DNA of 64,000 nucleotides. Source: Lepidodermella squamata (lineage: Eukaryota > Animalia > Gastrotricha). This document shows, piece by piece, positions 32,957-63,948 of the stretch. The notes below the pieces were generated by a model. The model had not been told where the DNA came from, made no database searches, and saw only the letters and a list, made by a program, of their open reading frames with translations. Location: contig JBLDXI010000023.1 in NCBI GenBank assembly GCA_047495785.1, forward strand, positions 186,001-250,000, read 5' to 3'. Position numbers and translations under genes: made by a program. Positions within the stretch are counted from its first letter, which is position 1; the number at the start of each line of letters is the position of its first letter.

Positions 32957-33700
32957 TCTTTCACTCTTCAAGTTCCTTCGTAGATGCAATCTTGACTATG
33001 AGCAACAGACGATAATAACAAATATTACGTTACGTAAGATGACGTAAGATGACTGCCCAGGTATGCAGGATGACTGCTACTGCGGGAAGTGAACTCTTTT
33101 AAACTCAACAGATTCTCGCTGAGTAGCTAAGACTGAGCGTCTATAGTAACAAAAAATTAGATTTCACGTATATAAACTATAGAAAATATGCATAAAATGC
33201 ATTTTTTTGATAAATTGTTTTTTCATCTGCAGTAGAATAGAAAATTCCTAAAATTATGTTTTATGAGGGGCGGCAATTTTACCGAGATTCTTGGGGGCTA
33301 AACCGCTCCACTTAACGCCTCTCGGCTTTCTCGGCGTATCTGAACCAGGTAATTCATGCTGAAAGTGCAATTGTAAACGGTGTGTTTATTCACATGCAAA
33401 AAATGCGCGCAGTTATGTGTCACACGGTGCCTGTGGTGGCTACATTTGGCTTCGCGCCCACTTTCCGAACTTTGTACTCAAGTTTGCTACTATTTTTACC
33501 ACTCACCTCTCTCATCGTTTTAATTGGCAGCCAATTGAGTCTAGCGTTCAAAAGTCTCTGCATATCTTTTGTCTGAAGTCAATCTTGCCAGTTCTCGCTG
33601 TGAACCCTTTGCAATTTGTTACTGATCACTTCCTCATTTTGTTTTACAGAGAATGTAGTGATTGCTTACAAGTAAAGTTGTTTTATTCATAATACTTATT

Positions 33701-36700
33701 ATGACGTCGAGTGAAAATAAGTCGGCAAAGGAGAGTATTGGCGTTGAGAAGCGCCTATTTCAAGACTTCTCGAGGTTCTGCAAACGCTCTCAATCGTTGA
33801 CCGAACATGAGCGACGACATCATGAACGTCCGACCGAAAGAAAGTTTCGTTCAGTGTCGTGTGATCCATCACATTGTCAGTGCCCTTCTGAGAAGAAGGA
33901 GGTCGAGAAACGGCGGAGTCGAACCTCCTTTATGGTGCTACAAGGGGATGAGACAACGTTGATTGGTGCAACCGAGCAAGATCGCGTCGAGGAGGACGAT
34001 GATGAAGGCGATAAGCCAGTTGCAACATCGCCGCAGGGTCGTTTCCTCAAATTTTCCACAGAAATCGGACGAGGTGCTTTTAAAACCGTATTCAAAGGCC
34101 TTGATACGGAAACCGGTGTGGCCGTTGCGTGGTGCGAGATTCAGGAGAAGAAATGGCGAAAATCCGAGACTCAGCGGTTTCATGAAGAAGCGGAGATTCT
34201 GAAAAGCCTTCATCACAACAACATCGTGAGATTTTACGATTACTTTATCGATCAAAAGAACAAGCTGATTGTTCTGGTCACTGAACTCATGACTTCGGGA
34301 ACTCTTCGAACATACATCAAGCGATTTAAGAAAATCAATCTCAAACTGATGAAGAACTGGTCGAGGCAGATTTTGAAGGGCTTGAATTACCTTCACAGCC
34401 AAACTCCGTCCGTAATTCATCGAGATTTGAAGTGTGATAACATTTTCATCACCGGGGCGAGTGGCCTTGTGAAAATCGGCGATTTAGGCCTGGCGACGTT
34501 GAAAAAGCGGTCTTTCGCGAAGTCTGTCATAGGAACTCCTGAATTCATGGCGCCTGAGATGTACGAAGAGAAGTACGATGAATCTGTCGATGTCTACGCG
34601 TTCGGAATGTGTCTACTCGAGATGGCGACGTCGGAATACCCGTACAAAGAATGCGCATCAGCCGCTGCAATCTACCGAAAAGTCATAAACGGCATAAAAC
34701 CAGAATCTTTCAAGCTCATTGAGCACCAAGAGTTACGAAACATCATCTCAGGCTGCATTCGGCCTGACACCACCGAAAGGTACACTGTGCAGCAGTTGTT
34801 GCGGCTCGACTTTTTCTCGGATGAAGTCGCCGTCAAGGTGGAGTTGGTTTCGAGTGACCAACAACCGGCGGACATGTCGGTTATCAAATTTCAACTGCGA
34901 GTCGTCGACGCGAAGAAACGGCGCACAAAATTGGGCGAAAACGAGGCGATTCAATTTGCCTTCCACTCGAAAACAGACAAACCCGAAGCGATAGTCAGTG
35001 AATTGGTAAGTTGGAATTTCTGGTCGATTTTTTTGCTAAAAATTGAAGAAAAAAATAATTTTTGTTTTAATTCAAAATAATTCATAAATTAAAAATTGAA
35101 TATCGATTTTTTGAATTTTCATTGAATTTCGTGAATAGAAAATTAAGTTTTCAAATTTATCGAGAAAGAAATTCCCCGTTAATTTATAATTTCAATTCTA
35201 AATTAAATTCATAAATTAAAAAATGAATAATATCGAATTTGTTTGAAATTTTTCAAAATTACGTGAATTACTTAAATTAGCAAATTTATTTTTGTCTTCT
35301 CGATGCTTTTCAATTTTTTTTTGAGAATTGCCTGCTGTTTATACTGGCATGCGTTACAATTTTTTCCAGATAGTAATTAACGCCTCTCTGGTTTTTTATA
35401 ACCTCCACGCTGTGTTTGTTTAAGATAAGAGTGTTAAAAATACACCAAATTTGTGTAGTTTTCTTTTCGGCCATTTTCACGCCTACCGTGACATGTTTTT
35501 TTTATCACGTGAAAATTTGGCTGCCGTTCTTGATTCGCAACAGGATTTTCGTAGAGTACAAACAATAGCCGTGATTGGCGAGTTCAACATCAGCGGGGTC
35601 AGACAGTGTTTTATTGCCTGCAGCATGGCCAATTTACGAATTGAATAGGCTGGGGATGAAAAAAATGAATGGAACCTGATATTATACAAGAAAAAATACT
35701 AGCCTGTTTTTATTATTATTATTGCGGTTATATTATAAAATTGCGTTCATCTATTGACATGAGTAATTGCGCGCATAATAATTTTTTCTAGGCACCAACC
35801 ATCGCTACATATATTTGCTCTGTGTTTTTTTGCTCGCTTGCCTGATGGCAGTTACACTCGTCGATGAAAGTTCGGAAGTGGATGCACCCGGTGTGTCTGT
35901 CTATATACACGTGTGTGCTTTGCCTTGCTGGAAACACGCCAGCTGCTTTTCTGGCAGTCGAAGAAGAAAACGGCATAGAGGCACCCCGCTAGGAATGGCA
36001 AAAATTGGGTCGTGTTGTTATAATTTTTAAATATTTTTGATATAAATTGCTTAGACCTCGAAACAATGATTTGACGAGTGGTTATTTTTAGAACGAGCCG
36101 AGGCTCGGTTTCATGTTGCATGTACATGGTGCATACGTAGTATGTGCGTGGCTACCGATGGGCAGGTAAACACTCGGCTGTATTATACTAGGCAGTCGCC
36201 ACGGTTACACGAGTTGGCTGACGCAAGTAACGCCGTCACGGCCCAGCAGTGACGCACCAACCAAGTAATGAGGACGAAAAAAACGCATGAATGGATGATG
36301 GATTGATGGATGGGTCAAGAATACAATGAAGGACGGAAATATTATAAGACACATTTTTCAATAAGTAAAGGGCCAATTAACAAAAATAACTGGGTCATTT
36401 TTTGGAAAAAAAAAATTAAAATAGCTTTTTTGCCAATTTCCGGGCTCTAGATCGCTTATAGTCAATATGAAATTATTTTTGTTTTGAGGTTAAAATGAGT
36501 AGTCGTACAATTTAGAGAATTTATTTTTCCATAATTCGAGCAATGACATTCGCATATTTTACGGCGGGCATAGCAGCCATGTGCTACTCAGAAATGGGCT
36601 AATTTATGATATCGTGTCCATAGCGATAAAGCATAATAACCTGAAAAATTGGCAACTGATAACCTGCGTGAACCAATTTTTTGCTCACATTTTTTTGCGC

Positions 36701-50316: not shown

Positions 50317-51964
50317 TCATCGTTTTTGTTTTCGACTCGTCCGTCGCTGAAACTTGCCTTGAGACTGATGTTTTCGACTCGGTTTTTCGCGTCTCCTCCT
50401 GCTACGTCGCAGTCGTAATTGTTCGCCGCTCGTCTGCTTTTCACCATGGTGTCTTAACACTTGATGTCTTTGCTTATCTTTTTTAAACTCGACGACTCGG
50501 CGTTTTTTCTCGATTTTTCTGCCTGCGTTGCCATAGAAATCGAGAATAATTCGTGTAAATATTAATTATGTTTTGAAAAGATGGAAAATATCGCATTCAG
50601 CTGCTTCCTCGACCGCCTTGATGATGATAAAATATTATTATTATTATTATAAACTAATACTATTGCGAGAAAATGCGATGATGAATTTATTGAAAATTTA
50701 CTATCTAAAATATTATTGTATAACGCGACTCGACGACAATGGGTGACTCGAGCCAAGAATAAAAAATACAACACCTGAACTGCGATATGAAACACAAACA
50801 AATCTTTTCATGCTGTAAATATCAATGATAATTATACGATTATATTAGCGACTGTAATGTATGTAAATATCAGCAGCATCATCATCATCATCATTTTTGA
50901 TACTACCTGCGCGAGTAAAGAATAAAACAACAACACGGCTTCAACTGCATAGTATTATATCGTGTCAGTTTTTTTGCGTCTTCGAAACACCCGTGAGAGT
51001 AAAATAAAAGCAGAAAGTTGCGCCAGTTTCGGGATGAACAGCCAACACTTGTTTTGTTTCCAGCTTTCACATCAAGAAAATAAACTGATTTTCTCGAAAA
51101 ATTCTCCCGAAATAATGCAAAAGTTTCTGCGATGTTCTTTACGTATATGTATGTTTCATCGTTAAATTTCTAGAATGATGTGCGTTTGTTAATATTATTA
51201 TAATTGATTGAATTAGCTATCAAACTGCGATATTATTGCTATAATGTGTATAATATGTGAAAATGATGCGGTGACGACGGTTCGTCCCGCGTTCGCAACA
51301 GGCGAAGAAAAAATTGACTAAAATTCGATGCATTGGACATCATGAATAAAAACGAAAAAAAGCTGGCCTCATCCTCGCTGTTTTGACTTTCACTGTTCAG
51401 GCCGTTCTGAAAGCATTGGTAACGGAATTCACTACATAAATCCGGAATCCGGCGTACATCATATAGAGCCTTGCTCGTGCTGGGCGTTAGAGCTCGTAAA
51501 ACGGATCAAAAGGATACGTTTCGGTCTGCTTCATGTCATTTCAGAGATGATCACTGGAAACTTCTTAGGCCTAGCGCGATCTCCAACTGGTCCCAACTTT
51601 TCTCGCCCGTCCACCAAGTCCCACAATAAAGTTTGAAAATTCAACAAAACGATTCATCAATAAATCCTAAATAATTCCAGCTACATTTGACCTTGAATAA
51701 AAAGTTGATTCTGCTAAACATCGAGAACTATTTAGGTATTTTCCAGCCTTCATCATTTACGTAGCAGCATCTGCACTGGTACATACCTTATACGGAAGAT
51801 GTTCCCATCAATATTTTATTGAAAAATTCGGGGTATGTGTCTTTCCTTTTTATTAATTACTGATCCTTCATTATCTCAGGGTGATCAGGCTTCTCTTATC
51901 AAGATGTACCCTTTTATCTCCACTCTTTTGCTCACTCAGGATGAGTTTCCCCACGTCTCACAGC

Positions 51965-52355
51965 TTAATCCAGAAACCCCTCGCTGGCCTGGGAATCTCC
52001 GGCGGCTCCACGCCTCCTCGCCTCATCCAGGGTTCCAGTGGCGAACACGGAATCTCCAACAAAACCTGCGCTGCGATCCCTTCTCGCTTCATCTAGGGTT
52101 CCAGTGCCGCCCTGGGCAACTATGATAAAAGCTTCGTTACCGTCCCTTCTCGCTTCATCTAGAGAGCCAGTGGCGTACACGGAATCTCCGATTGAAGCTG
52201 AGCTGCTATACCTTTTCGCCTCGTTCAAGGCCAGGGGCACACATTCGACAAGTGCCACCAAGACGGCCTGTTAAAAATCAAAGCTTACTCGATTTACAGT
52301 CATTGGTTTATTTTCATCTTACCATCAGACATAGGGCGTGGAAAAAGTCTGACAT
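51965..52355 (-). CDS. Secreted multi-peptide precursor (neuropeptide-prohormone-like), 111 aa, 2 exons
   Basis: Exon 52323-52355 (MSDFFHALCLM), a 55-nt GTAAG..TTTTAACAG intron, and exon 51965-52267 give signal peptide MSDFFHALCLMAVLVALVEC followed by KR/RR-delimited repeats. AATAAA is on the minus strand at 51849-51854. Confidence 0.8.
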
Positions 52356-52356
52356 A

Positions 52357-52529
52357 ATATCGTTCGTGGCGCGGAAGAACCCGCACTTCGATGATTTTTT
52401 GCCCTGACTGTACCCCGCGAGTACAGCATAACGCGCAGTATTGCATATAGTATCCAAGGCTGTACTCGCGGGGTACAGTCAGGGCAAAAAATCATCGAAG
52501 TGCGGGTTCTTCCGCGCCACGAACGATAT
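52357..52529. repeat. Perfect foldback: 71-bp arms, 31-nt spacer
   Basis: 52357-52427 is the reverse complement of 52459-52529. Confidence 0.95.
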
Positions 52530-54100
52530 GTTGGCTTGAATGTGAATAAATATATTTTGCTCGTAAAATTCAGTTTTCAAACACAAAGAATGATCGTATA
52601 GCTAAGGCATTCTCACCGAAAAATACTTTCCTGTTCTCGTGCCAGCTTAGCAAACACTCGCCGGGGTAGTGGGCCGCCAATTGAAAACCCTAGGTGACGC
52701 AATATTGCTGACGCAAGATACCAACGCCTGATTCAACAGCGAAATAAACTTCATCCCTAATTATATTAATATATTATATTAAGAAACGTTGAGAATTATG
52801 GAATGATTGAAATTACGTTCGATTTATGAGACGAATCGGGGGAATCAGTAGAAATTTTAAAGACCGGCGAGGACAATTAGCCGCAGGTGAAAAATAGCCC
52901 GCCGCAAAATTGAGGAGTCGCTTTAAAACAAATTCGAACCCACAGATCATACGAAAAACAGAACTGATGGTAAATTTCCCCCTTAAATTGGTTTATATAA
53001 ATCACGATAGCCGCCATTCAACTCCTGTCACTTGCGCCCGACAATTGAGCCGATTGACAATTGAGTGCTTGTCACTGTTTTTCCGTGACCGTTACCTTTG
53101 TTTTTACGAGGTAATTTTACATTGTAACTAGCCGGGCTAATTTCTTCCATTTTATCGCACTAGGCCCCAGCATACAATCATGAACCGGGGTGCAGGGTGT
53201 CGCACCGACTCCCTTAAACCGGCTGGGTTTCTGTTTACATCACCGACGGACAGGCGCCGCCGATCAGCACAATTTTAGCAACAACGCTCTTTTTCTCGGC
53301 TATAATTACGATGAATGTTAATGTTAGTGAAAATGTTGTGAAATTTTATAATATACCTAATAAAAGCAATCAATTCAGAATTCCAATCAGATCAATCCAC
53401 CTTTGATTTTGAATTTTGAAATATTTCTCTTAATTTTCTTTGATATTTTCGTAACTTTTATTCATTCGCCGAGAATAACTGCCGCCACAAAGACCGTGCA
53501 CGGCGGCTCGGGCGTACAATCATCGAGGTCTCGATCGAACTGACATTGATGCTGATACGCAACAATTTCGCGTTCATAGTTTTCAAATTCGGTAACCGCT
53601 CACGAATTCCTGAGAACTCACTTCCAACAATTAAGCAAGTCATCTCAAGATATACCTCGTCGTTACGTCACATGGCGGCGTGCTTGTCTCTGCAAGTTGC
53701 GCGACAAGCCGCGCTTCCGCAACGCGAGTCCGGCGAGAGCTGATTAATTACCGCACGCGCACGTCGCTTTTCGCGCACCGATCTCCGCAAATTGGGTCAT
53801 CGCGCAATTATTATTAGTACACCTGCGCGAGAGGCGCCGCTAATTGCGCGGCTTCTGTGCGCATCATTATTGCGATATGATGAGGTCATAAAAACGCACA
53901 CGCCGATTTCGGGTCACTTTCATTACTTTTCTTTCGCCATTTAGACCACAACATTATTAGTATTGCATCAGCTTTGTTTAACACGCGGTTTAGTTTTATT
54001 GCGGTGAACATTTGTATCAATTTTGTCACTGATTTCTTACTTTCTTTTTTAGTGATTTTTCTGTTATTTGATTGATTTTTCGAGCTAATTTGATTTACGA

Positions 54101-57100
54101 ATGCCGTCTTCCTACGATTTCCCACCTGGTAACAATATTTTCAGTGAAAAATAGTCTAGACTATAGATAGTCATCGCTTTTCTCAGGTACAGTATCGGCG
54201 AAGTTGCGCCATTTTCTGCCCGGCGATTTGAACCCGATGCAACGTGAAGTCGTCTCCAACGTAAGGCGAAATTTGTCATTTTTCCCATGCGATTTCAACA
54301 CGTTCTATTCCGTTATAATAGATGTTGTTCTCAGATAAAAATTTCGTTCTCGCGTCGCCGACCGGCAGTGGCAAAACTGCGGCCATGGAAATGGCCATCG
54401 TCCGTCTGCTCGAACGCCAGTCCCTCAACGCGCCCAAGCCGTGGATCGTCTACTGTAAGCAATTTACTTTTCCATTCAAGTATTTGCAAATGTTTAACCC
54501 AAGCTAACTCTGGCTTACTTACCCAGTTATCGTTTCCGGAAATTCGGCATTCAACAGATTTTTGAAAATTTTGAAAATTTGAAAATATTTTTTGCGATTT
54601 TTGAATTTTTTTGAATTTTAAAATGTTTCTTTTCAGCGTTTTACTGACTTTTTTGCAGAATTGTAAATATTTTCAAAATTCCTATTGCTCCTTTTTTACT
54701 GAGAAATTGTTAAGCCACGAAAGATTTCCGTTCAACATCGCCCTTTTGTCCCTCTTTTCAACCTCTTTGTTTGTATGATGGATTCAGTATTATTTCACAT
54801 TTTTTCGACCCGCAGTTGGTTCGATGAAATCGCTGTGTCAGGAGCGCATCTCCGACTGGGAGACTAAATTCGCGGCCGCGCAGCTTCGAGCCGTGAAACT
54901 GACTGGCGAAGATGGGACGAGCGCGTTCTACCAGCAGCCGCAACCGTTACCACCCGCTGTTGAAAACGACGACGAGGACGAAGGCGACGAAGAAGAAGAC
55001 GACGAAGCCGAGTTGGGCGAAGAAGACGTGCTGCAGTCGACGGCGGCTAGTGACGAGGCGAGTGTTCTGCAGTCGGCGCATTTAATCTGCACAACCCCGG
55101 AGAAATGGGATTTCCTGTTGAGGAAGTTCGGCTGGCTCTACTCGCGGGTGAAGCTGGTGCTCGTCGACGAGTGTCATTCGATCGGCGACAAGACACGCGG
55201 CGCATCTCTCGAGGCAATCGTCACTCGCATGCTCGTGTAAGCCATCAATTTGATTTTTGAAATTCTTGAAATCAAATTTTTAAAATTTGAATTTTTTTAA
55301 ATTTCATGTTTGCTTATAATTTTGTATTTTAAAATTTTATTTGCCAAATAATATTTTTAAATTTTAAATTTAAATTTTGAAGATTGGAAAAATTCAATGT
55401 TTGAATTTTTATAAAAAATATTGTAAAGTCCTGGGAAAAATTATCCGTCTTTTTTACAATTCTAAACAATTTGTTATCAAATTTTTTTTAATATTAGAAA
55501 ATGCCCGTCCTCGTCGTGTCGCTTCATTGCCGTCTCGGCGACGGCTCCGAACGCGGCTGATTTCGCGAGATGGCTGGAAGTCAACCCGCTCGACGGCAAT
55601 CACGCCAACCATGCGCAGATCTTCGGCAACGAGTACCGTCCGGTGCCGCTGGAAAACGTCGTTAAAACGTATTCGCCCAACTACCCGAAAATTCTCGACT
55701 TCGAAGTTCAAGTCCTCGATAGGGACCTGCCGAACGTTATCAACGTAAGTGCCAATTATTCTCGATTAAATATTCAAAAAAAATCAGAATTAAAAATTTG
55801 AATTTCTTTTATAATTTTTATAAATTTCTAAAAAGATGTTTGCATTTTCCCAGCGATACGCCGACAAGAAGCCGACGCTTGTATTTTGTGCTTTCAAGCG
55901 GTGCACTTCGGAATCGGCGGAGCGCATCGCCACCGCGGCCAACCGGCGCCGACTGGGCCTCACCGCTGAGTCGGCTGAGCTCAAGGCAGTCGCAGCGAAA
56001 TCGATCCAGGATCCGGTACTGCGTGGCGTTCTGCCGTATGGAATCGCCTTCCATCACGCGTCCCTGACCGACAAGGACAAGCGTACCGTCGAACAGCTGT
56101 TCAAGCAGCGCAAAATTTTCATCCTATGTAAGATCATTTTTCATTATTTAAATATTTTATTGGAATATTTAGTATAGCCATAAAAAAATCACTCATAATC
56201 AGAATCTTTGCAATTTTTATCGTAGAAGGGCAAAATTAAAAAAAATCCGAAAACATTATTCCGAAAGGTATTTTGAATTTTTCGATTTTTCTCCGCTTTG
56301 GTTCCGCAAAATGAGATTTTTTCAAATAATTTCACTTTACATTTTTTTTATAATTTTTTCTAAGTTGCAACTTCGACGCTTGCGGTCGGCGTGAATCTGC
56401 CCGCTCACCTGGTCATCATCAAGCCGCCGCGTCAATTCTCATCCGAGACGAAGAACGTCGAAGAACTCTCGCCAATCACAGTCGTTCAAATGATGGGCAG
56501 AGCCGGGCGGCCTGGCCTCGATGACACCGGTGTCGCCGTCATCATGACGAATTTAGAAACCAAGGCGCACTACGAAACCATCATGCGAAACGGCGCCCGA
56601 ATCGACTCGGCCCTGCATATCCGATTCACGGAGCGATTTCTGACCGAAATCGTCTCATCAAGCTTCGACTCAGCCGATTCCGCAAAATGCTGGATCGATC
56701 GCTCATTTCTATCGATCGGATTCCAGACAAATCGATCGTACTACAAATCGAATTTTCAGAAATTCGAAGATTTCGCCAATCACCTGATCGCGACGGCTAT
56801 CGATAAGCTGCTCGCGGCCGAAATGATTACGAAAATCGATGAGCATCGCTTCGTGCCGACGATTGCTGGCCAAATTATGGCTCGACTCAACATCGCCCTC
56901 GAGACAATGGTCGCTGTTGTTAAATTCCTTGAAAATCCGAAGAAAGATTTCAGTCTCGAATCGCTGATCGATTTCGCCTCGAAGCAGGTCGAAGTGACGA
57001 GCGGCGCCTACGTCAGCGGCGGCGATCAGCCAGACGAAATTCGCTACCTGGCGAGGCGATTAGGCATCGCGCTTCCCAGCTACTTCGCTGTCGCGGACAA

Positions 57101-59737
57101 AATCCGTGTGGTTACGCGGGCCGAGTTGGCTGAGATGGGCATGTCCGGCGAACTGGCGAGCAATGCCACGTACTACCGTCGCGGCATTGTCCGAGTAGTC
57201 GGTTAGTTTTTCAATTTTTTTCAAATTTTTAGCTGCACTAACATTTAAAAGGGCAAACATAGCGGTAATTTTTAATTAAATTTTGATTAATTGTGAATCA
57301 ATTTTTTGAAATTTTTTGAAATTTTGAAATTTAACTTTTAATTTAAATTTAAATTTTGCTTCAATTTTTCAATTTATTTTCATTTGGAGCCATGTGATCG
57401 AAAAGAGTGTTTTTATGAAATCTTATTCTCAGTAAATTTATTAAATTAATATTTTTCCGGGTGTGATCGAAAGGAAATTTGCCCCAATTTTTATTAAATT
57501 TATCTGATTTTGAGAAAACCTGAAAATTATTGCTGTTGCGTAACAAGTGAAAATATTGCGAAACACAGATGTAGGTGTCAGGTGTCATTCTTAATTTCAT
57601 TCTCAATATTGAAAAATGAAGGCGACTTCAAGTTCCTTGACGAAACTTGAATTTTTCAGCCTTCTTATTCAACATTTCGAAAATAAATTCAATTTCAAGG
57701 TTCTCCAAGTTATAGCCTTATTTCGTGCTCTAGAACTTGAAACTATAATCGTAGTCTCAATTTTCGCTTCGCGTTGATCGGTTGATCGGTTCGCGATGGG
57801 AAACAGAATGATAATAACGAGAAGAAGGGCAAGAGAGAAAGGGGCAAGAATTACACAAGAAATTAAAATTGTAATTCGATATCTTGGTATGAACCTCATG
57901 CGACTCCGGGAATCCATGTTTGGTGTCCCTCATAACGCATCTGAGTGATCCTTTGAGCGAAGTTCAGCGTCGATCCCAGGCCACGTTCGAATTGTCATCG
58001 AATGTCTTTTTGGTATACTCAAAGGTTGCTTCAGAGTCATTCGCGATGATGACAACAAATTTCGACTCCGCTACACATGTATTCTGTGTGCCCGTTGCGT
58101 GCTTCATAATATTGCAACATCGCGAAACGAGCGTGTTGATGAAAACTGGCTACCTCAAGAGAAAGAAGGCTCACATAGTTTTTCCCACTTATCTAGCGCT
58201 TAAGGGTAGTGCAGTAGGCTTTGCTCGTCGGGGTCAACTAGTCGAAATTTTCGATGAAATTTTGACGAAATTTATAAAAATCAAGCTCGACTTCAATAAA
58301 CTTGATATGAAGACGAACATCACAAGTGCCTGCTCAAACTTAGCGCGGCTCGAAGGAGAAAGTGTCTGGACAGGAATTGGCGATGTTTGTAGCCCTGTTG
58401 CGTAATCGATTTTGGGCAAAAATATATTAATTTTAAGGAATTTCGCCAAAAATCAAATAAAATCTATGTCCTGCAGGACATAGATTTTATTTGATTTTTG
58501 CCAGATTTTGTCGTTTTCAGCCAAATTTTATTAAAATTTGACAATAAATTGTCATAAATGAGGTCAAACAGGAAATTTAAATACATTTTGATAAATTTGA
58601 CGCCGATCTGGCTCAAAAATTATCGAATCTTAAATATTAAATAAAAATTTACCGAAAAACGGTAAAATTTAAATATTTTTTAGCTCAAAACGACAAAATA
58701 TATTTAATTTCAGCTTTTTATAAAAACATTTACTTCGATCACATGGCTGTTGTTCATTTAAATTTAAATTGTTCATTTTCTCAATTTATTCATATTGGTA
58801 ATTTGAAATTTAAATTTGAATTTTGTGAGGTTTCAAAATTTCAAAATAAAATTTTAAATTTCATTTTTAAGATTTTTTATTTAGTATGAATATTTTTTAA
58901 ATTTGAATGTCTTTAATTAGTTGTTCATATTTGTTTGATTTTTCGACAACAGGCTGTTTGATTGCGTTGGTCGAAGCGAAGGTCGACGAGAATCCGATCG
59001 ATTACTTGAATTACGTTAGGCTAATCACCGCTCAGCAGACCCTTCGCAGTGGCATCTCGCCGAATTCGCGACTCATCTCGAAACAGCTGTACGGCGTGGG
59101 CGCGGCTCGGTCTCAAAAACTAGCGGCTCAGGGCCTAACAACCTTCGATAGCATTGCGGCAAATGACGCCGTAACCATCGGCAGGATTTGCTCGGCCGGC
59201 ACCCGGATCGGCGCGCGTGTGCGAAAAGATGCGGCAGCGCAGCCGCGTTACCAATTGAACGTCGACGGGCCGATGATGGCGGGCTGCAGAGTAAACGTGG
59301 CCATTAAGCTGGTGAATGCGCCTCTGGTGGCGCGAAACGGCCGCGCCTTGCTACAGTCCTGTTACCTCTTAATTGGTTAGTTGCCGAATTAAAATGATTC
59401 AGAAAATAACTAGAATTTGCACGGTTAAACTTAAGGTTTCGACTAATGGTGCTTAATTAATATTGTTTCTTGTTATGTATCAGGCTGTGGCGAAGAATTG
59501 CTTGCCCGCAAAGTCATTCGCAACGCGGATTTTTTCCGAAACAATCGCCGGTGCGGGACATTGGGCGTTACCATTTCTACTCAGACTGGTGCCTCATGTC
59601 TTCGCATCAACCTGATCAACGTCGACGTAGTCGGCTGTGACACGGCTTTCACGCGAACCATTTCTCCTTGCAATTTTACTGATGCATCGTCCAGCGAATC
59701 ACCGACGAAAAGGATTAAACGGGAAAATCGTAACTAG
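54101..59737 (+). CDS. HFM1: Ski2-like DExH helicase, HFM1/MER3 (meiotic); 9 exons
   Basis: Exons 54101-54128, 54187-54260, 54322-54454, 54816-55236, 55498-55744, 55854-56127, 56365-57201, 58953-59375 and 59484-59737. Motifs: LNPMQ, SDKNFVLASPTGSGKTAAMEMAI, KSLCQERISDW, TTPEKWD, VDECH..RGASLEAIVTRM, RFIAVSAT, RPVPL, GIAFHHA, TSTLAVGVNLPAHLVIIK, QMMGRAGRP, and Sec63-like KQLYGVG. There is a single helicase cassette, unlike Brr2/ASCC3. Confidence 0.85.
57388..58748. mobile_element. Putative TIR-bounded insertion in HFM1 intron 7
   Basis: AGCCATGTGATCGAA..TGTTTTTAT at the left end and ATAAAAACA..TTCGATCACATGGCT at the right end. No clear target-site duplication and no recognisable transposase. 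Confidence 0.55.
58447..58500. repeat. Perfect spacerless 54-bp palindrome
   Basis: CAAAAATCAAATAAAATCTATGTCCTG|CAGGACATAGATTTTATTTGATTTTTG. Confidence 0.95.
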
Positions 59738-60076: not shown

Positions 60077-60158
60077 GTCGCTATGCCCGAGTGGTTAAGG
60101 GGTCTGACTAGAAATCAGATGCGGTCTCCGCGCGTAGGTTCAAATCCTACTGGCGACG
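60077..60158 (+). tRNA. tRNA-Ser(AGA)
   Basis: Cloverleaf with long variable arm; anticodon arm TCTGA-CTAGAAA-TCAGA; T-run downstream. Confidence 0.92.
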
Positions 60159-60233
60159 ACAGTTATTTTTGCATTATAACGACTGAAACTCAGTTCTGCA
60201 GTTAGCCTCCAGAACAGTCCTCGCTTTCATCAG

Positions 60234-60305
60234 GCGTCAGTGGTGTAACGGTCAGCATGGTTGCCTTCCAAGCAGCCGATCCGGGTTCGACTCCCGGCTG
60301 ACGCA
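60234..60305 (+). tRNA. tRNA-Gly(TCC)
   Basis: Acceptor GCGTCAG/CTGACGC, loop CTTCCAA, GGTTCGACT. Confidence 0.93.
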
Positions 60306-60395
60306 CACGTTTTTAGCTCACACGTTTGAGAGCAGCAAACGCATTGCTAGTGACGAGATTATGAAGCTGTCCTTTCCCAAAACCAGCGTTCGAGA

Positions 60396-60467
60396 GGTCC
60401 CATGGTGTAGCGGTTAGCACTCTGGACTCTGAATCCAGCGACTCGAGTTCGATTCTCGATGGGACCT
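60396..60467 (+). tRNA. tRNA-Gln(CTG)
   Basis: Acceptor GGTCCCA/TGGGACC; CTGGA-CTCTGAA-TCCAG. Confidence 0.93.
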
Positions 60468-60568
60468 TGGCATGTTTTTTCAAACAAAATTAGCTCACTC
60501 TCAACTGCTGGAAACTTGCGAGGATCATAATTTTTGTTACCATTCAAACCTTTTGTTTCACTAGCCTA

Positions 60569-60640
60569 GGGGGCATAGCTCAGTGGTAGAGCGTCTCATT
60601 CGCATTGTGAAGGTCTCGGGTTCAATCCCCGATGCCTCCA
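60569..60640 (+). tRNA. tRNA-Ala(CGC)
   Basis: G3:U70 pair, loop TTCGCAT; one T-T mismatch in the anticodon stem. Confidence 0.85.
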
Positions 60641-60679
60641 GTTGGCCACTTTTTTCGCGTGAACGTTTGAGAAGTAATA

Positions 60680-62549
60680 CAGTGCTCCCTCGATAAAAGC
60701 ACTGGGTCGGGAGCCAGACCCGGTCTTTTAACAAGGGAAAGCTATAACGAGGGCTGTAATTGAATGCAGAAGCTAAAAATAGACCGTTTCTACGCCTTAG
60801 GACAGTTGCCATGCCAACGCGCAGAAAGAGACGGACACGGATTACGTGTCATTACAATTTTCGCTCGCTGAAGGCTGTGAAACAATAACACTGAATCATA
60901 AGTTCGTCGCCAAGTTTTTATTCTTATTTGCCAGGGCGGTTTTGATTTGACTGGTTGGCCTTGTTTTTTTTACTCTGATTTTAAGTCCTGCCTGGAAACC
61001 TGTATTCTCATTATTTCAATTTACTTCAAAAATGCCCAGCTCGTCCGATTTCGCAAACAACTTTCATTTGAAATAACAGCTTAAAACATCAATCACCTTG
61101 GTCAAGATTGACCAGAATACTTCTGAATTAATCACCAGCAAATTCAGCCAAACATTCTCAAGAAAATTCAGTGTTCAATTCAGAACTCATGCTTGGCCTA
61201 AAATTCGTAGAATTATTTAAAAAGTAATATGAAATTTGAAACAATTAGGATGAAAAATGTATTTTCGATAATTTCTTCTCGGTTAACCTGAATTTTTCTT
61301 TTTTAAATTCATCGATTAATGGCATTGAACAATCACGGGCCAATTTCAAGGCATAAGACGTGTGGCTCCGTCAAGAGGGAACGATTCGATAGGTCGTTTG
61401 ATTGAATGGAATAAATTTGTATATTCTCAGGCGGGATCTGATTTTTATTCAACTGACCTATTAAGATCAGAGCAAGGTAAAAAATCGGGCAGAAGCTCCC
61501 GCCGCCCCTCCTCGGGATGTTGCGATTTTCAAAGTCAAAATCGAATGATTAACAGTTGTGAAAAAACGCGGAAAATTGCCAGGGCGTTGAGCAATGAAAT
61601 CGTTAAGTAGTGGCAGCCAGTTTCATGGTAGATCAGGCCTATAGACTATCGAAAATCGGCTAACAATTCCAATGACTCAGGACAACTCGAACGATGAAAT
61701 CGGTTTATTATGAGAATAAATCTATGTATCTAAATTCAATTAAATCTGAAAACAAGGACTTCGCTTGATTACGCAACACAGCTGGGAAATAGTTTTGAAA
61801 AAACTGGAAAAAATCATTAATTTTCGACCAGAAAAACCTGAATTTTACTAGTCATTTCCCACGGCTCACGGTTTATTCCAGCGGGGTTCTCCCAAAAATG
61901 GAGAAATAACTACCGAATCGTTAACAAATACCACGAAGTTTCAATTTTTTCTGACAAAAGTCACGATTTCTAATCCTACTTCGATCATGTTGATAATTTA
62001 AAAAGCTTTTCTGGCCGGGAAAGCTGCTAAAACATGATAAATCAGGGCAATTCGATGGGTGTTTAATTGATCAGCTATTGATCTCAGAAAAATCTGCAAA
62101 TCAAGAAGATTGAAGATAGACGGGCATTCTTAAAGATGATGAAACGAGTTACTAATTGTTTTCTTATGAATTATGAACTGGCTGAAGAATTTCTGATGGA
62201 GTTTCAACTAAAAAAGCAGGACGACTCGCAGCACGACTTGAGTGGCAGCTAATCCACACACTCTGTTGCATAATCAGTCATTTCAAAACCACAAGAACAG
62301 CTTAATGCACTGATGATCTTTCAACTCGTTTGAACTGAACTTGAAATAACTGGATCTCATGAAACCACGACAACACGCCGCTAGGTTTCTAGGAACGCAA
62401 ATTTTTCACACTTAATTTTTTAAATTTATCCAATAATTATTGTTTGTTTAATTAAAAATTTACAACTAATTTATTTAGCAGGGTCCAAAATTGCGGTCTA
62501 CAAACGAGGGAGTTCTTTTAACGAGGGTGCCACTAACGAGGGAGCACTG
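60680..62549. mobile_element. 1.87-kb TA-flanked pogo/Tigger-like TIR element, apparently non-autonomous
   Basis: TA|CAGTGCTCCCTCG...CGAGGGAGCACTG|TA; three AACGAGGG subterminal repeats at the right end; no long ORF. Confidence 0.8.
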
Positions 62550-62585
62550 TAGCTATAATACTGATGATAAGCATGCGAAAAATAG

Positions 62586-62669
62586 TGTCAGAAGTGGGGT
62601 TCGAACCCACGCCCTCTTTCGAGGACCAGATCTTGAGTCTGGCGCCTTAGACCGCTCGGCCATCCTGAC
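62586..62669 (-). tRNA. tRNA-Leu(CAA), intronless
   Basis: GTCAGGATGGCCGAGCGGTCTAAGGCG CCAGA-CTCAAGA-TCTGG, long variable arm. Confidence 0.93.
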
Positions 62670-62768
62670 TGCCTGATTGAACATTCAATTGGATTCAGAT
62701 GAATAACCAGCGGGTTCAGCTTCGAGCATTCACTAAACCTCAAATCTTGTTTAGGCTGTACTTTATGC

Positions 62769-62834
62769 GACAGGGGGCGAAATCGCGTCGGACTTCGGAT
62801 CCGAAGATTGTGGGTTCGAGTCCCATCAGCGTCG
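62769..62834 (+). pseudogene. tRNA-Arg(TCG)-like gene with an aberrant 5' third
   Basis: Intact anticodon arm TCGGA-CTTCGGA-TCCGA and T-arm, but the 5' acceptor strand pairs only 4 of 7 and there is no normal D-loop/A-box. Confidence 0.7.
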
Positions 62835-62950
62835 TCCGCTTTTGTATTTTTGTTAGTTTCAATAATTCGCTTCAAAGGCCATTGAATAGAATATTTCGCC
62901 AACTGCTTGCGTAAATTTAATCTGCCTGCAATCTACCACGCATTTCAAGG

Positions 62951-63023
62951 GCCTTCCTAGCTCAGTCGGTAGAGCATGTGACTTTTAATCACAGGGTCGG
63001 GGGTTCGAGTCCCCCGGAGGGCG
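62951..63023 (+). tRNA. tRNA-Lys(TTT)
   Basis: TAGCTCAGTCGGTAGAGC; TGTGA-CTTTTAA-TCACA. Confidence 0.93.
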
Positions 63024-63110
63024 CAAGCTTTTTCCTCAGTTGCTCGGTTTAGCTGCATTCGGCTGATTTCACCGCTTCGTCGAATCACTTGCCGTGGCGT
63101 TAACTACGAA

Positions 63111-63183
63111 GGGGGATTAGCTCAAATGGTAGAGCGCTCGCTTAGCATGCGAGAGGTAACGGGATCGACGCCCGTATCCTCCA
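63111..63183 (+). tRNA. tRNA-Ala(AGC)
   Basis: G3:U70 pair; CTCGC-TTAGCAT-GCGAG; A54-type T-loop GATCGA. Confidence 0.93.
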
Positions 63184-63258
63184 CAATTTTTTCTGCCTGT
63201 AGAAACGGTTTGTTCGCCGAAATGAGACGTCGTCCCTGAAATTCTAGCTGTCACCTTC

Positions 63259-63330
63259 GGCTCAGTAGCTTAGTGGTAGAGCGTCTGCCTAGTAAGCAGA
63301 AGATCGAGGGTTCGATCCCCCCCTGAGCCT
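63259..63330 (+). tRNA. tRNA-Thr(AGT)
   Basis: Acceptor GGCTCAG/CTGAGCC; TCTGC-CTAGTAA-GCAGA; one A-C mismatch in the T-stem. Confidence 0.85.
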
Positions 63331-63414
63331 GGTATTGGGTGAATTTTTTGAAAATAAAGCCACAAAACTTTGCCAGTCAGTTTTTATGTTGCAGGCGTGG
63401 AAATGATAAAAATG

Positions 63415-63486
63415 TTCCCTGACCGGGAATCGAACCCGGGCCGCCGCGGTGAAAGCGCGGAATCCTAACCACTAGACCATCAGGGA
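63415..63486 (-). tRNA. tRNA-Glu(TTC)
   Basis: TCCCTGATGGTCTAGTGGTTAGGAT; CCGCG-CTTTCAC-CGCGG. Confidence 0.93.
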
Positions 63487-63577
63487 GATGATATGATGAC
63501 AACAAGACCGCTGGGCGTTTTGTGTTCATCTGTCACTTAGCGCTTTTTGCGCAGGTCGTCAAAGGTAAAAATGCGGC

Positions 63578-63649
63578 GGGCCCGTTCGGGAATTGAACCC
63601 GAGACCTCTCGCACCCGAAGCGAGAATCATACCCCTAGACCAACGGGCC
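63578..63649 (-). tRNA. tRNA-Pro(CGG)
   Basis: GGCCCGTTGGTCTAGGGGTATGATT; CTCGC-TTCGGGT-GCGAG. Confidence 0.93.
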
Positions 63650-63727
63650 GGTGCTACGCTACCGCTAAGATGAAGGCTCTACCTAAGCGTTCGTAATGGC
63701 ACTTGGGCTTAGCAAAAACGTGGGGCA

Positions 63728-63800
63728 CGCCGAGACCCGGGATCGAACCAGGGACCTTTAGATCTTCAGTCTAACGCTCTCCCAACTGAGCTATCTCGGC
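63728..63800 (-). tRNA. tRNA-Phe(GAA)
   Basis: GCCGAGATAGCTCAGTTGGGAGAGCG; TTAGA-CTGAAGA-TCTAA. Confidence 0.93.
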
Positions 63801-63874
63801 TATTAAGTACAGCAGTGCTAGAGTTGATGCTTCGCTAGCTCATCGCAAGCTGTTATAGTTTGATCTAAAAATTG

Positions 63875-63891
63875 CGCTCCTGGGTGGGCTC

Positions 63892-63931
<40 letters not shown>

Positions 63932-63948
63932 AATTGCGCCACAGAAGC
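63875..63948 (-). tRNA. tRNA-Asn(GTT)
   Basis: GCTTCTGTGGCGCAATTGGTTAGCGCG; TTCGG-CTGTTAA-CCGAA. Confidence 0.93.

Follow-up and report, generated by a model that had tools for sequence, protein, structure and literature searches.

Multi-copy proneuropeptides of invertebrates, such as those of the FMRFamide, pedal-peptide and myoinhibitory-peptide types, consist of a signal peptide and tandem peptides bounded by KR or RR (PMC8557429). Acidic residues can stand just ahead of the basic pair, and the supplement of PMC8557429 includes a nemertean FMRFamide precursor with the spacer DDLDEA-KR. Among the precursors printed there, pedal-peptide units start with NFDQIG, MLDSIS, PFDRIG or QLDDLG, so that the basic pair is followed, after one residue at most, by a motif x-(F/L)-D-x-(I/L/V)-(G/S), in units of 10-14 residues. 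According to reviews, the neuropeptides of gnathiferans and rotifers are hardly sampled (PMC8557429, PMC5818035). Pedal peptides and orcokinins are non-amidated, acidic and multi-copy. Fungal Kex2-processed repeat proteins, for example the yeast alpha-factor precursor, are also secreted, and each of their repeats has a variable core, a constant acidic surrounding and a terminal dibasic site.

Here we analyzed a candidate peptide precursor in Lepidodermella squamata, located in a stretch of 64,000 nucleotides (contig JBLDXI010000023.1 of assembly GCA_047495785.1, positions 186,001 to 250,000), which we call the window and to which all coordinates refer. An initial annotation, made from the letters of this DNA, had proposed a hidden two-exon gene for a secreted multi-peptide precursor. 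The predicted product resembles multi-copy proneuropeptides in its putative signal peptide, in tandem peptides bounded by basic pairs with acidic residues just ahead of them, in its small size and in the presence of convertase genes in the same genome. It differs from them in having no detected sequence relationship, no amidation signal and four copies only, and its conserved part is the C-terminal flank of each peptide instead of a C-terminal amide motif. With pedal peptides and orcokinins it shares non-amidated acidic multi-copy peptides and a short D-S-V/I-like element, as well as a G-F near the C-terminus in its last peptide only (EGFLD), but its D-S-V is internal, its 20-residue units end in LDEA and homology is not detectable. 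The Kex2-processed fungal proteins would follow the same logic, but as an analogy only, as there is no sequence similarity and the host is an animal.

Results

A two-exon gene model on the minus strand

Exon 1 of the candidate gene (52323..52355, minus strand, 33 nt) consists of an ATG and 10 further codons, encodes MSDFFHALCLM, the first portion of the predicted signal peptide, and has an A at position -3 of the ATG. A 55-nt GT-AG intron (52268..52322, minus strand, GTAAGA...TTTTTAACAG) separates it from exon 2 (51965..52267, minus strand, 303 nt), which holds the remaining coding sequence and ends in a TAA stop at 51967-51965. Joining 52355-52323 to 52267-51965 by script yielded a CDS of 336 nt and a product of 111 residues, and thereby rebuilt the 33-nt ATG exon, the canonical 55-nt intron and the product that had been proposed. 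The open-reading-frame lister found a sole ORF on the precursor, of 98 codons with a TTG start (51965-52261), and misses the true start, as the initial annotation had remarked; because this ORF has no internal Met, any translation requires an upstream exon. Two AATAAA hexamers read from the minus strand (51854-51849 and 51820-51815) are candidate polyadenylation signals, the first of them 111 nt past the stop, where about 110 nt had been announced, and the second 34 nt beyond the first.

The second portion of the predicted signal peptide, AVLVALVEC (52241..52267, minus strand), was located with a hydropathy script. The peak of hydrophobicity is the 13-mer CLMAVLVALVECV (mean KD 2.71), which straddles the splice junction just N-terminal of the first dibasic site, and 13-mers that hydrophobic make up 0.25% of the six-frame translation of the window. 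The n-region of the putative signal peptide has no positively charged residue. By the (-3,-1) rule, cleavage is likely after Cys20, before Val21, with Val at -3 and Cys at -1.

Behind the predicted signal peptide, the product reads as a series of peptides closed by basic residues. The N-terminal propeptide VPLALNEA is followed by KR (52211..52240, minus strand), and its LNEAKR resembles the repeat tail LDEARR. Repeat unit 1 (52145..52210, minus strand) has 22 codons for an acidic 20-residue peptide with the C-terminus TGSLDEA and for RR; unit 2 (52079..52144, minus strand) encodes a 20-residue peptide with the divergent core FIIVAQGG and the tail TGTLDEA, then RR; and unit 3 (52013..52078, minus strand) encodes the 20-residue peptide GDSVFATGTLDEA and RR, with a third R added at 52012-52010. 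The C-terminal peptide (51968..52009, minus strand) has 14 residues, ends in EGFLD and is immediately followed by the stop codon. The basic sites (KR 29-30, RR 51-52, RR 73-74 and RRR 95-97) are spaced by exactly 22 codons, and the basic pairs are kept in every repeat unit. The anticipated layout, a hydrophobic N-terminus followed by dibasic-flanked repeats, is thus present. After the basic sites, the predicted peptides would begin with YSSSAS, DGNEAF, DRSAGF and GAAGDS, and the predicted 20-mers have a net charge of -3 to -4. A single-sequence AlphaFold model had low confidence (pLDDT 42.5), with neither a confident fold nor a helical repeat; a propeptide would be expected to look like this, but the model does not argue for one.

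Tandem Repeats Finder described the array as period 66, 3.1 copies, 70% matches and 0% indels over 52013-52219, and it is the sole tandem array scoring at least 100 within the 64-kb window. The "exact 66-bp repeat" of the initial annotation is exact in its period, but the three full units are only 68-77% identical in pairwise comparison (23-32% divergence), with no indel in 207 bp. Four DNA units had been counted; three are full, and the one at about 52215 is a six-codon echo (LNEAKR) of the tail.

Substitution patterns and choice of strand

The nine-codon tail T-G-(S/T)-L-D-E-A-R-R is constrained among the units, with pS of 0.27-0.68 against pN of 0-0.05, whereas in the 13-codon cores pN equals or exceeds pS. 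Five of the six substitution events in the tail hit the third codon position, and the three substitutions between the tails of units 3 and 2 are all synonymous. The binomial estimate for this wobble bias is about 0.007 for the proposed frame and about 0.05 when three phases are allowed. At the DNA level, two comparisons involving unit 2 had differences at 3 of 27 positions in the tail and at 17-18 of 39 in the core (Fisher p 0.003-0.006). A constant tail combined with divergent cores would not be expected from neutral minisatellite decay. Across whole repeat units, there was no overall third-position excess.

No other of the six frames reached the codon-usage score of the spliced frame (0.041), and the 48 flank chunks scored 0.009 at most, but every chunk of four bona fide genes scored higher (minimum 0.085). 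Openness of the frame is nearly automatic when a stop-free unit of 22 codons is repeated three times. A plus-strand mirror frame, antisense to the precursor, is open over 101 codons (51969-52271), has coincident wobble positions and reads the repeat as LLASSR-V/E-PV, and another plus-strand frame is open across 100 codons. We rejected pN/pS as proof of the reading strand, as the mirror frame is equally open and gives identical values; because its wobble positions coincide, substitution tests that are blind to strand are uninformative at the precursor, and the strand was therefore chosen by other features. The canonical GT-AG intron is present on the minus strand only. There, the ATG mini-exon completes the hydrophobic segment, the basic pairs are evenly spaced, the codon score is the best, and the stop lies right behind the last peptide. 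Neither the mirror frame nor the near-automatic openness of a three-fold repeat had been mentioned in the initial annotation, and the same holds for the polymorphic MITE described below.

Coverage and polymorphism in two sequencing runs

In searches of public runs, few contained the gene and none was recorded as RNA; a second search yielded two further runs, which held 5% and about 0% of the words of the gene. Two runs were used for the analyses that follow. Run X1 is at least 99% identical to the reference, and its label as RNA is a guess. Run X2 resembles genomic DNA of another individual, with an even depth of about 72-86 and two haplotypes visible in places.

X1 reached a depth of 35-38 on 50503-51311, a single-copy stretch according to X2, and had no coverage on 51409-51913 and 52419-53500. 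This pattern probably reflects RNA, as it suits RNA better than whole-genome DNA. On the gene, X1 contig pieces covered 51955-51996, 52093-52229, 52231-52268 and 52323-52360 at a depth of 3-6.6, with a gap at 51997-52092 within exon 2 and zero depth on the intron (52269-52322); the listed pieces fully explain the bin depths. The 38-letter piece 52360-52323 stops exactly at the donor, and another runs one base past the acceptor, this base being identical to the last G of exon 1. Of the spliced transcript that had been suggested as a check, the exon limits are therefore visible, with contigs that end at the exon edges, but no contig or read with a 52323|52267 joint was reported. Of the four X1 contigs on the gene, three are chimeric and flip from one strand to the other (51955/52151, 52168/52268 and 52229/52360, with joins within 100-200 nt). 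In one chimeric contig, the 43 letters past exon 1 match neither the intron nor exon 2 and could be placed nowhere on the stretch. These flips look like foldback or hairpin artefacts of an amplified library, and they limit what X1 proves across the genome. As evidence of expression, the exon-limited coverage is suggestive but not decisive. It ends at 51955, short of both AATAAA hexamers.

In X2, six substitutions are packed into 52300-52310, all of them intronic, and one heterozygous nonsynonymous variant in the C-terminal 14-mer (52000 C>T on the plus strand) changes Gly to Arg. The second haplotype has 13 substitutions in 215 nt of the 3' flank (51571-51930) and is 6% divergent there; over 975 nt upstream of the gene, no differences were found. 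Diversity around the precursor locus is very uneven in this individual. The polymorphism was rejected as a sign of constraint on the CDS, because the 975 nt upstream are equally invariant and the signal is thus not a clean one.

A polymorphic MITE next to the start codon

In the reference, an element is inserted one base upstream of the ATG. It occupies 52357..52529 including the target-site duplication (element of 165 bp, 52361-52525), and it is a perfect palindrome of 173 nt, nearly all hairpin, with arms of 71 nt (counted with the duplication) and a loop of 31 nt. The element has no ORF and is flanked by the 4-bp target-site duplication ATAT. At least 16 near-identical copies are present in the 121-Mb genome (92-100% identity), and a comparison of flanks revealed that ten other copies share the same element ends and have 4-bp duplications of varied AT-rich sequence. 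In X2, one contig runs from 52356 straight to 52526, so that the 169 bases 52357-52525 are absent and the site is empty. By its inverted repeat, its copies and the empty site, 52357-52529 is a MITE, a non-autonomous DNA transposon, and because X2 carries the empty site, the insertion is recent and polymorphic.

A TATA-like motif, TATATTTAT (52546..52554, minus strand), would lie 25-30 nt before the ATG in the MITE-free allele; its role as a promoter element is putative, and with that allele, the X1 piece starting at 52360 would imply a very short leader. Two outcomes are left for the reference allele: the MITE is transcribed and forms a strong hairpin leader, or it severs the gene from its promoter. 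Because the recent insertion parts the ATG from the upstream region, the reference allele may be weakly expressed or silent.

Genomic context

The precursor gene is flanked on one side by a helicase gene of the plus strand and on the other by an ORF-poor stretch with expression in X1, and no further gene lies in between. The multi-exon helicase-like gene (54824-57206, plus strand; DECH box, ...ATSTLAVGVNLPAH...) starts about 2 kb upstream, in divergent orientation. From frame continuity, it would have an intron of 237 nt at 56128-56364 (GTAAGA...CTAAG), with the same GTAAGA donor as the precursor intron; introns here are therefore not all of about 55 nt. On the other side, 50503-51311 has no ORF longer than 79 codons and is covered by two long X1 contigs (1437 and 534 nt), at the depth given above; it may represent a long UTR or else a non-coding RNA.

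In the same window, a WNK-type kinase, an ANF-receptor domain protein and a TPR-SET protein are each encoded by a long single-exon ORF. The kinase ORF (33662-35080, plus strand) is uninterrupted over 472 codons and combines a WNK-type kinase domain with an OSR1_C motif; its best matches, in molluscs and annelids, have 65-69% identity (63-69% including mites), and none was closer in the searched length range. The kinase thus marks the host as a bilaterian, with molluscs and annelids nearest to it. A rotifer spliced-leader sequence had no match in the genome, from which we conclude nothing. An Rfam scan placed 13 tRNA genes, on both strands, within 4 kb at 60077-63948.

Searches for related sequences

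A protein search of the 121-Mb genome of the animal itself matched the precursor locus only, so that the gene is single copy, and the frameshifted genomic copies that, according to the initial annotation, would have spoken against a gene are absent. A periodic DEA-RR pattern likewise matched only this locus in 121 Mb, with 0 matches for the controls. Outside this genome, neither a word-indexed search against 5.8 billion proteins (E 1) nor a look-up of the exact product gave a match; a scan of metagenome contigs matched 436 pattern stretches, of which 0 were confirmed; and the ESM Atlas held no usable match for the precursor. Pfam gave nothing better than E 0.06, and no TPR family up to E 10. 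A text search of 8.4 million papers for the peptide motifs returned no relevant paper, and none among neuropeptide papers.

A full HMMER search of 1.84 billion representatives had seven matches, none of them a peptide precursor; all are long repeat proteins of unrelated families (CHAT with TPR_10/12, Kelch, bacterial Ig). The top match, the CHAT-TPR_10/12 protein P0121, reached E 2.4e-16 over 11 stretches, in an alignment of I-A-D-I-L-Y-A-R-G-E-L-D-E-A-L-R with I-G-D-S-V-Y-A-T-G-S-L-D-E-A-R-R (11 of 16 positions) that runs through Y-A-x-G-x-L-D-E-A-x-R, repeated eleven times. The E-value is low because 11 near-identical target repeats add up; one aligned stretch has about 35 bits, which is non-significant against 2.4e11 residues. 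We rejected the seven matches as relatives and regard them as repeat-on-repeat artefacts, given their unrelated families and about 35 bits per stretch. The C-terminus TG(S/T)LDEA, which had been matched to no recognised family, found no relatives in the protein, profile and genome searches either. Because no relatives were found in any collection, conservation across species cannot be demonstrated.

The machinery that such a precursor would need is encoded in the genome. P_proprotein (PF01483) had ten genomic matches above the curated cut-off, eight of them at E < 1e-17, and the genome thus encodes at least eight proprotein-convertase P domains.

Discussion

In our view, the minus strand of the locus probably holds a genuine two-exon gene, present in one copy and restricted to its lineage, for a secreted, convertase-processed multi-peptide precursor of 111 residues. 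A signal peptide of about 20 residues, assembled across the 55-nt intron, would route the product into the secretory pathway, where subtilisin-like proprotein convertases would cut after KR30, RR52, RR74 and RRR97, and a carboxypeptidase would then trim the basic residues. The predicted products are the propeptide VPLALNEA, three acidic 20-mers that share the C-terminal TG(S/T)LDEA, and one 14-mer ending in GFLD; none would be amidated, because no Gly precedes the basic pairs. We infer this secretion, cleavage and release from the sequence, as we do a neuron or a gland cell as the site of production. Every basic pair is preceded by a conserved L-(D/N)-E-A, which may belong to the active peptides themselves or to the context by which the cleavage site is recognized.

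One objection is that there is no protein-coding gene here, and that a diverged 66-bp minisatellite is open by chance, with a coincidental mini-exon, hydrophobic stretch and dibasic pattern; the X1 fragments would then be transcriptional noise, non-coding RNA or amplified DNA. We regard this as unlikely. In its favor, a three-fold repeat is nearly bound to be open, and in fact both mirror frames run for 101 codons without a stop, and another plus-strand frame does so for 100. Third-position excess is absent across whole units, the codon score is lower than that of true genes, no collection that was searched holds a relative, and the X1 contigs are chimeric and lack the spliced joint. On the other hand, neutral repeats would not be expected to conserve a tail beside divergent cores, to collect nearly all tail changes at wobble positions, or to stay free of indels over 207 bp despite 23-32% divergence. 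A signal-peptide-like segment stands exactly where it is required and is completed by a canonical intron, both exon edges are respected by X1 coverage, and no other strong tandem array exists in the window.

We hold it extremely improbable that the stretch is what decay has left of a TPR-type repeat protein, or that the coding frame is the mirror ORF of the plus strand. TPR_10/TPR_12 proteins (CHAT-TPR, NB-ARC-TPR) have Y-A-x-G-x-L-D-E-A-x-R in common with the precursor, two 22-residue units of which roughly equal one TPR unit of 41-42 residues, and P0121 was the best match in the library, with its motif agreement at 11 of 16 positions. However, a single P0121 stretch is non-significant, the other matches are Kelch, bacterial Ig and unrelated repeat proteins, no Pfam TPR model responds even at E 10, and no TPR gene of the animal's own genome matches the precursor. 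The 22-residue period does not agree with the 34 or 42 residues of TPR units, AlphaFold modelled no helical fold with confidence, and the precursor, unlike TPR proteins, has a predicted signal peptide and dibasic sites; we take the resemblance to be a chance match of repeat on repeat. The mirror ORF is open across the same 101 codons, but it has no ATG before codon 51 of 101 and no signal peptide, and the GT-AG intron whose edges X1 coverage follows is on the opposite strand.

If the precursor is real, its kind has to be considered, and a divergent member of the pedal-peptide/orcokinin family, to which the initial annotation had loosely linked it, is very unlikely. The peptides are multi-copy, non-amidated, acidic and dibasic-flanked, and their D-S-V-(Y/F)-x-T presumably recalls Aplysia pedal peptide. 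The last peptide has D-S...G-F near its end, like units printed in the supplement of PMC8557429. However, the family motif x-(F/L)-D-x-(I/L/V)-(G/S), which in the precursors printed there follows the basic pair directly or one residue later, in 10-14-residue units of many copies, is absent directly after the cleavage site from all four precursor peptides. The D-S-V stands eight residues in, the units have 20 residues, and three of the four peptides end in LDEA; many copies of about 10-15 residues with a C-terminal G-F-x would be typical of pedal peptides, and here there are four copies, including three 20-mers ending in LDEA. The HMMER search returned no peptide precursor, nor were the motif strings found by text search in the neuropeptide literature, and this link is not supported.

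Another reading keeps the secretion but not the signalling: the product might be an acidic repeat protein that stays unprocessed, or might serve in a gland, in defence or as a pheromone instead of in neurons; we judge it possible, if rather unlikely. Long, acidic, unmodified peptides with a constant flank and a variable core suit non-neuronal secreted peptides too, RR followed by Asp is a less canonical convertase site than KR, and no evidence here bears on cell type. Against the unprocessed form, the strict 22-codon spacing of the basic pairs, conserved while the cores vary, points to processing, and the gland, defence or pheromone variants overlap with the multi-peptide precursor that we favor, which leaves the cell type open.

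Within the precursor that we favor, we propose with much reserve a more specific identity, which we hold to be possible but improbable: the first member of a family of signalling peptides, as yet undescribed, that are acidic and non-amidated, share a conserved C-terminal TG(S/T)LDEA and are produced in neurons or neurosecretory cells, in a phylum with barely catalogued peptide signalling. If this identity is true, the MITE would supply a ready-made low-expression allele. Its position one base from the ATG lets alleles that carry the insertion be compared in nature with alleles that lack it. The constant-flank, variable-core design is potentially usable. We see the precursor as a useful annotation and a target for peptidomics rather than as a surprise; if real, it would enlarge by one orphan family the peptide repertoire, so far poorly known, of a small spiralian-like invertebrate.
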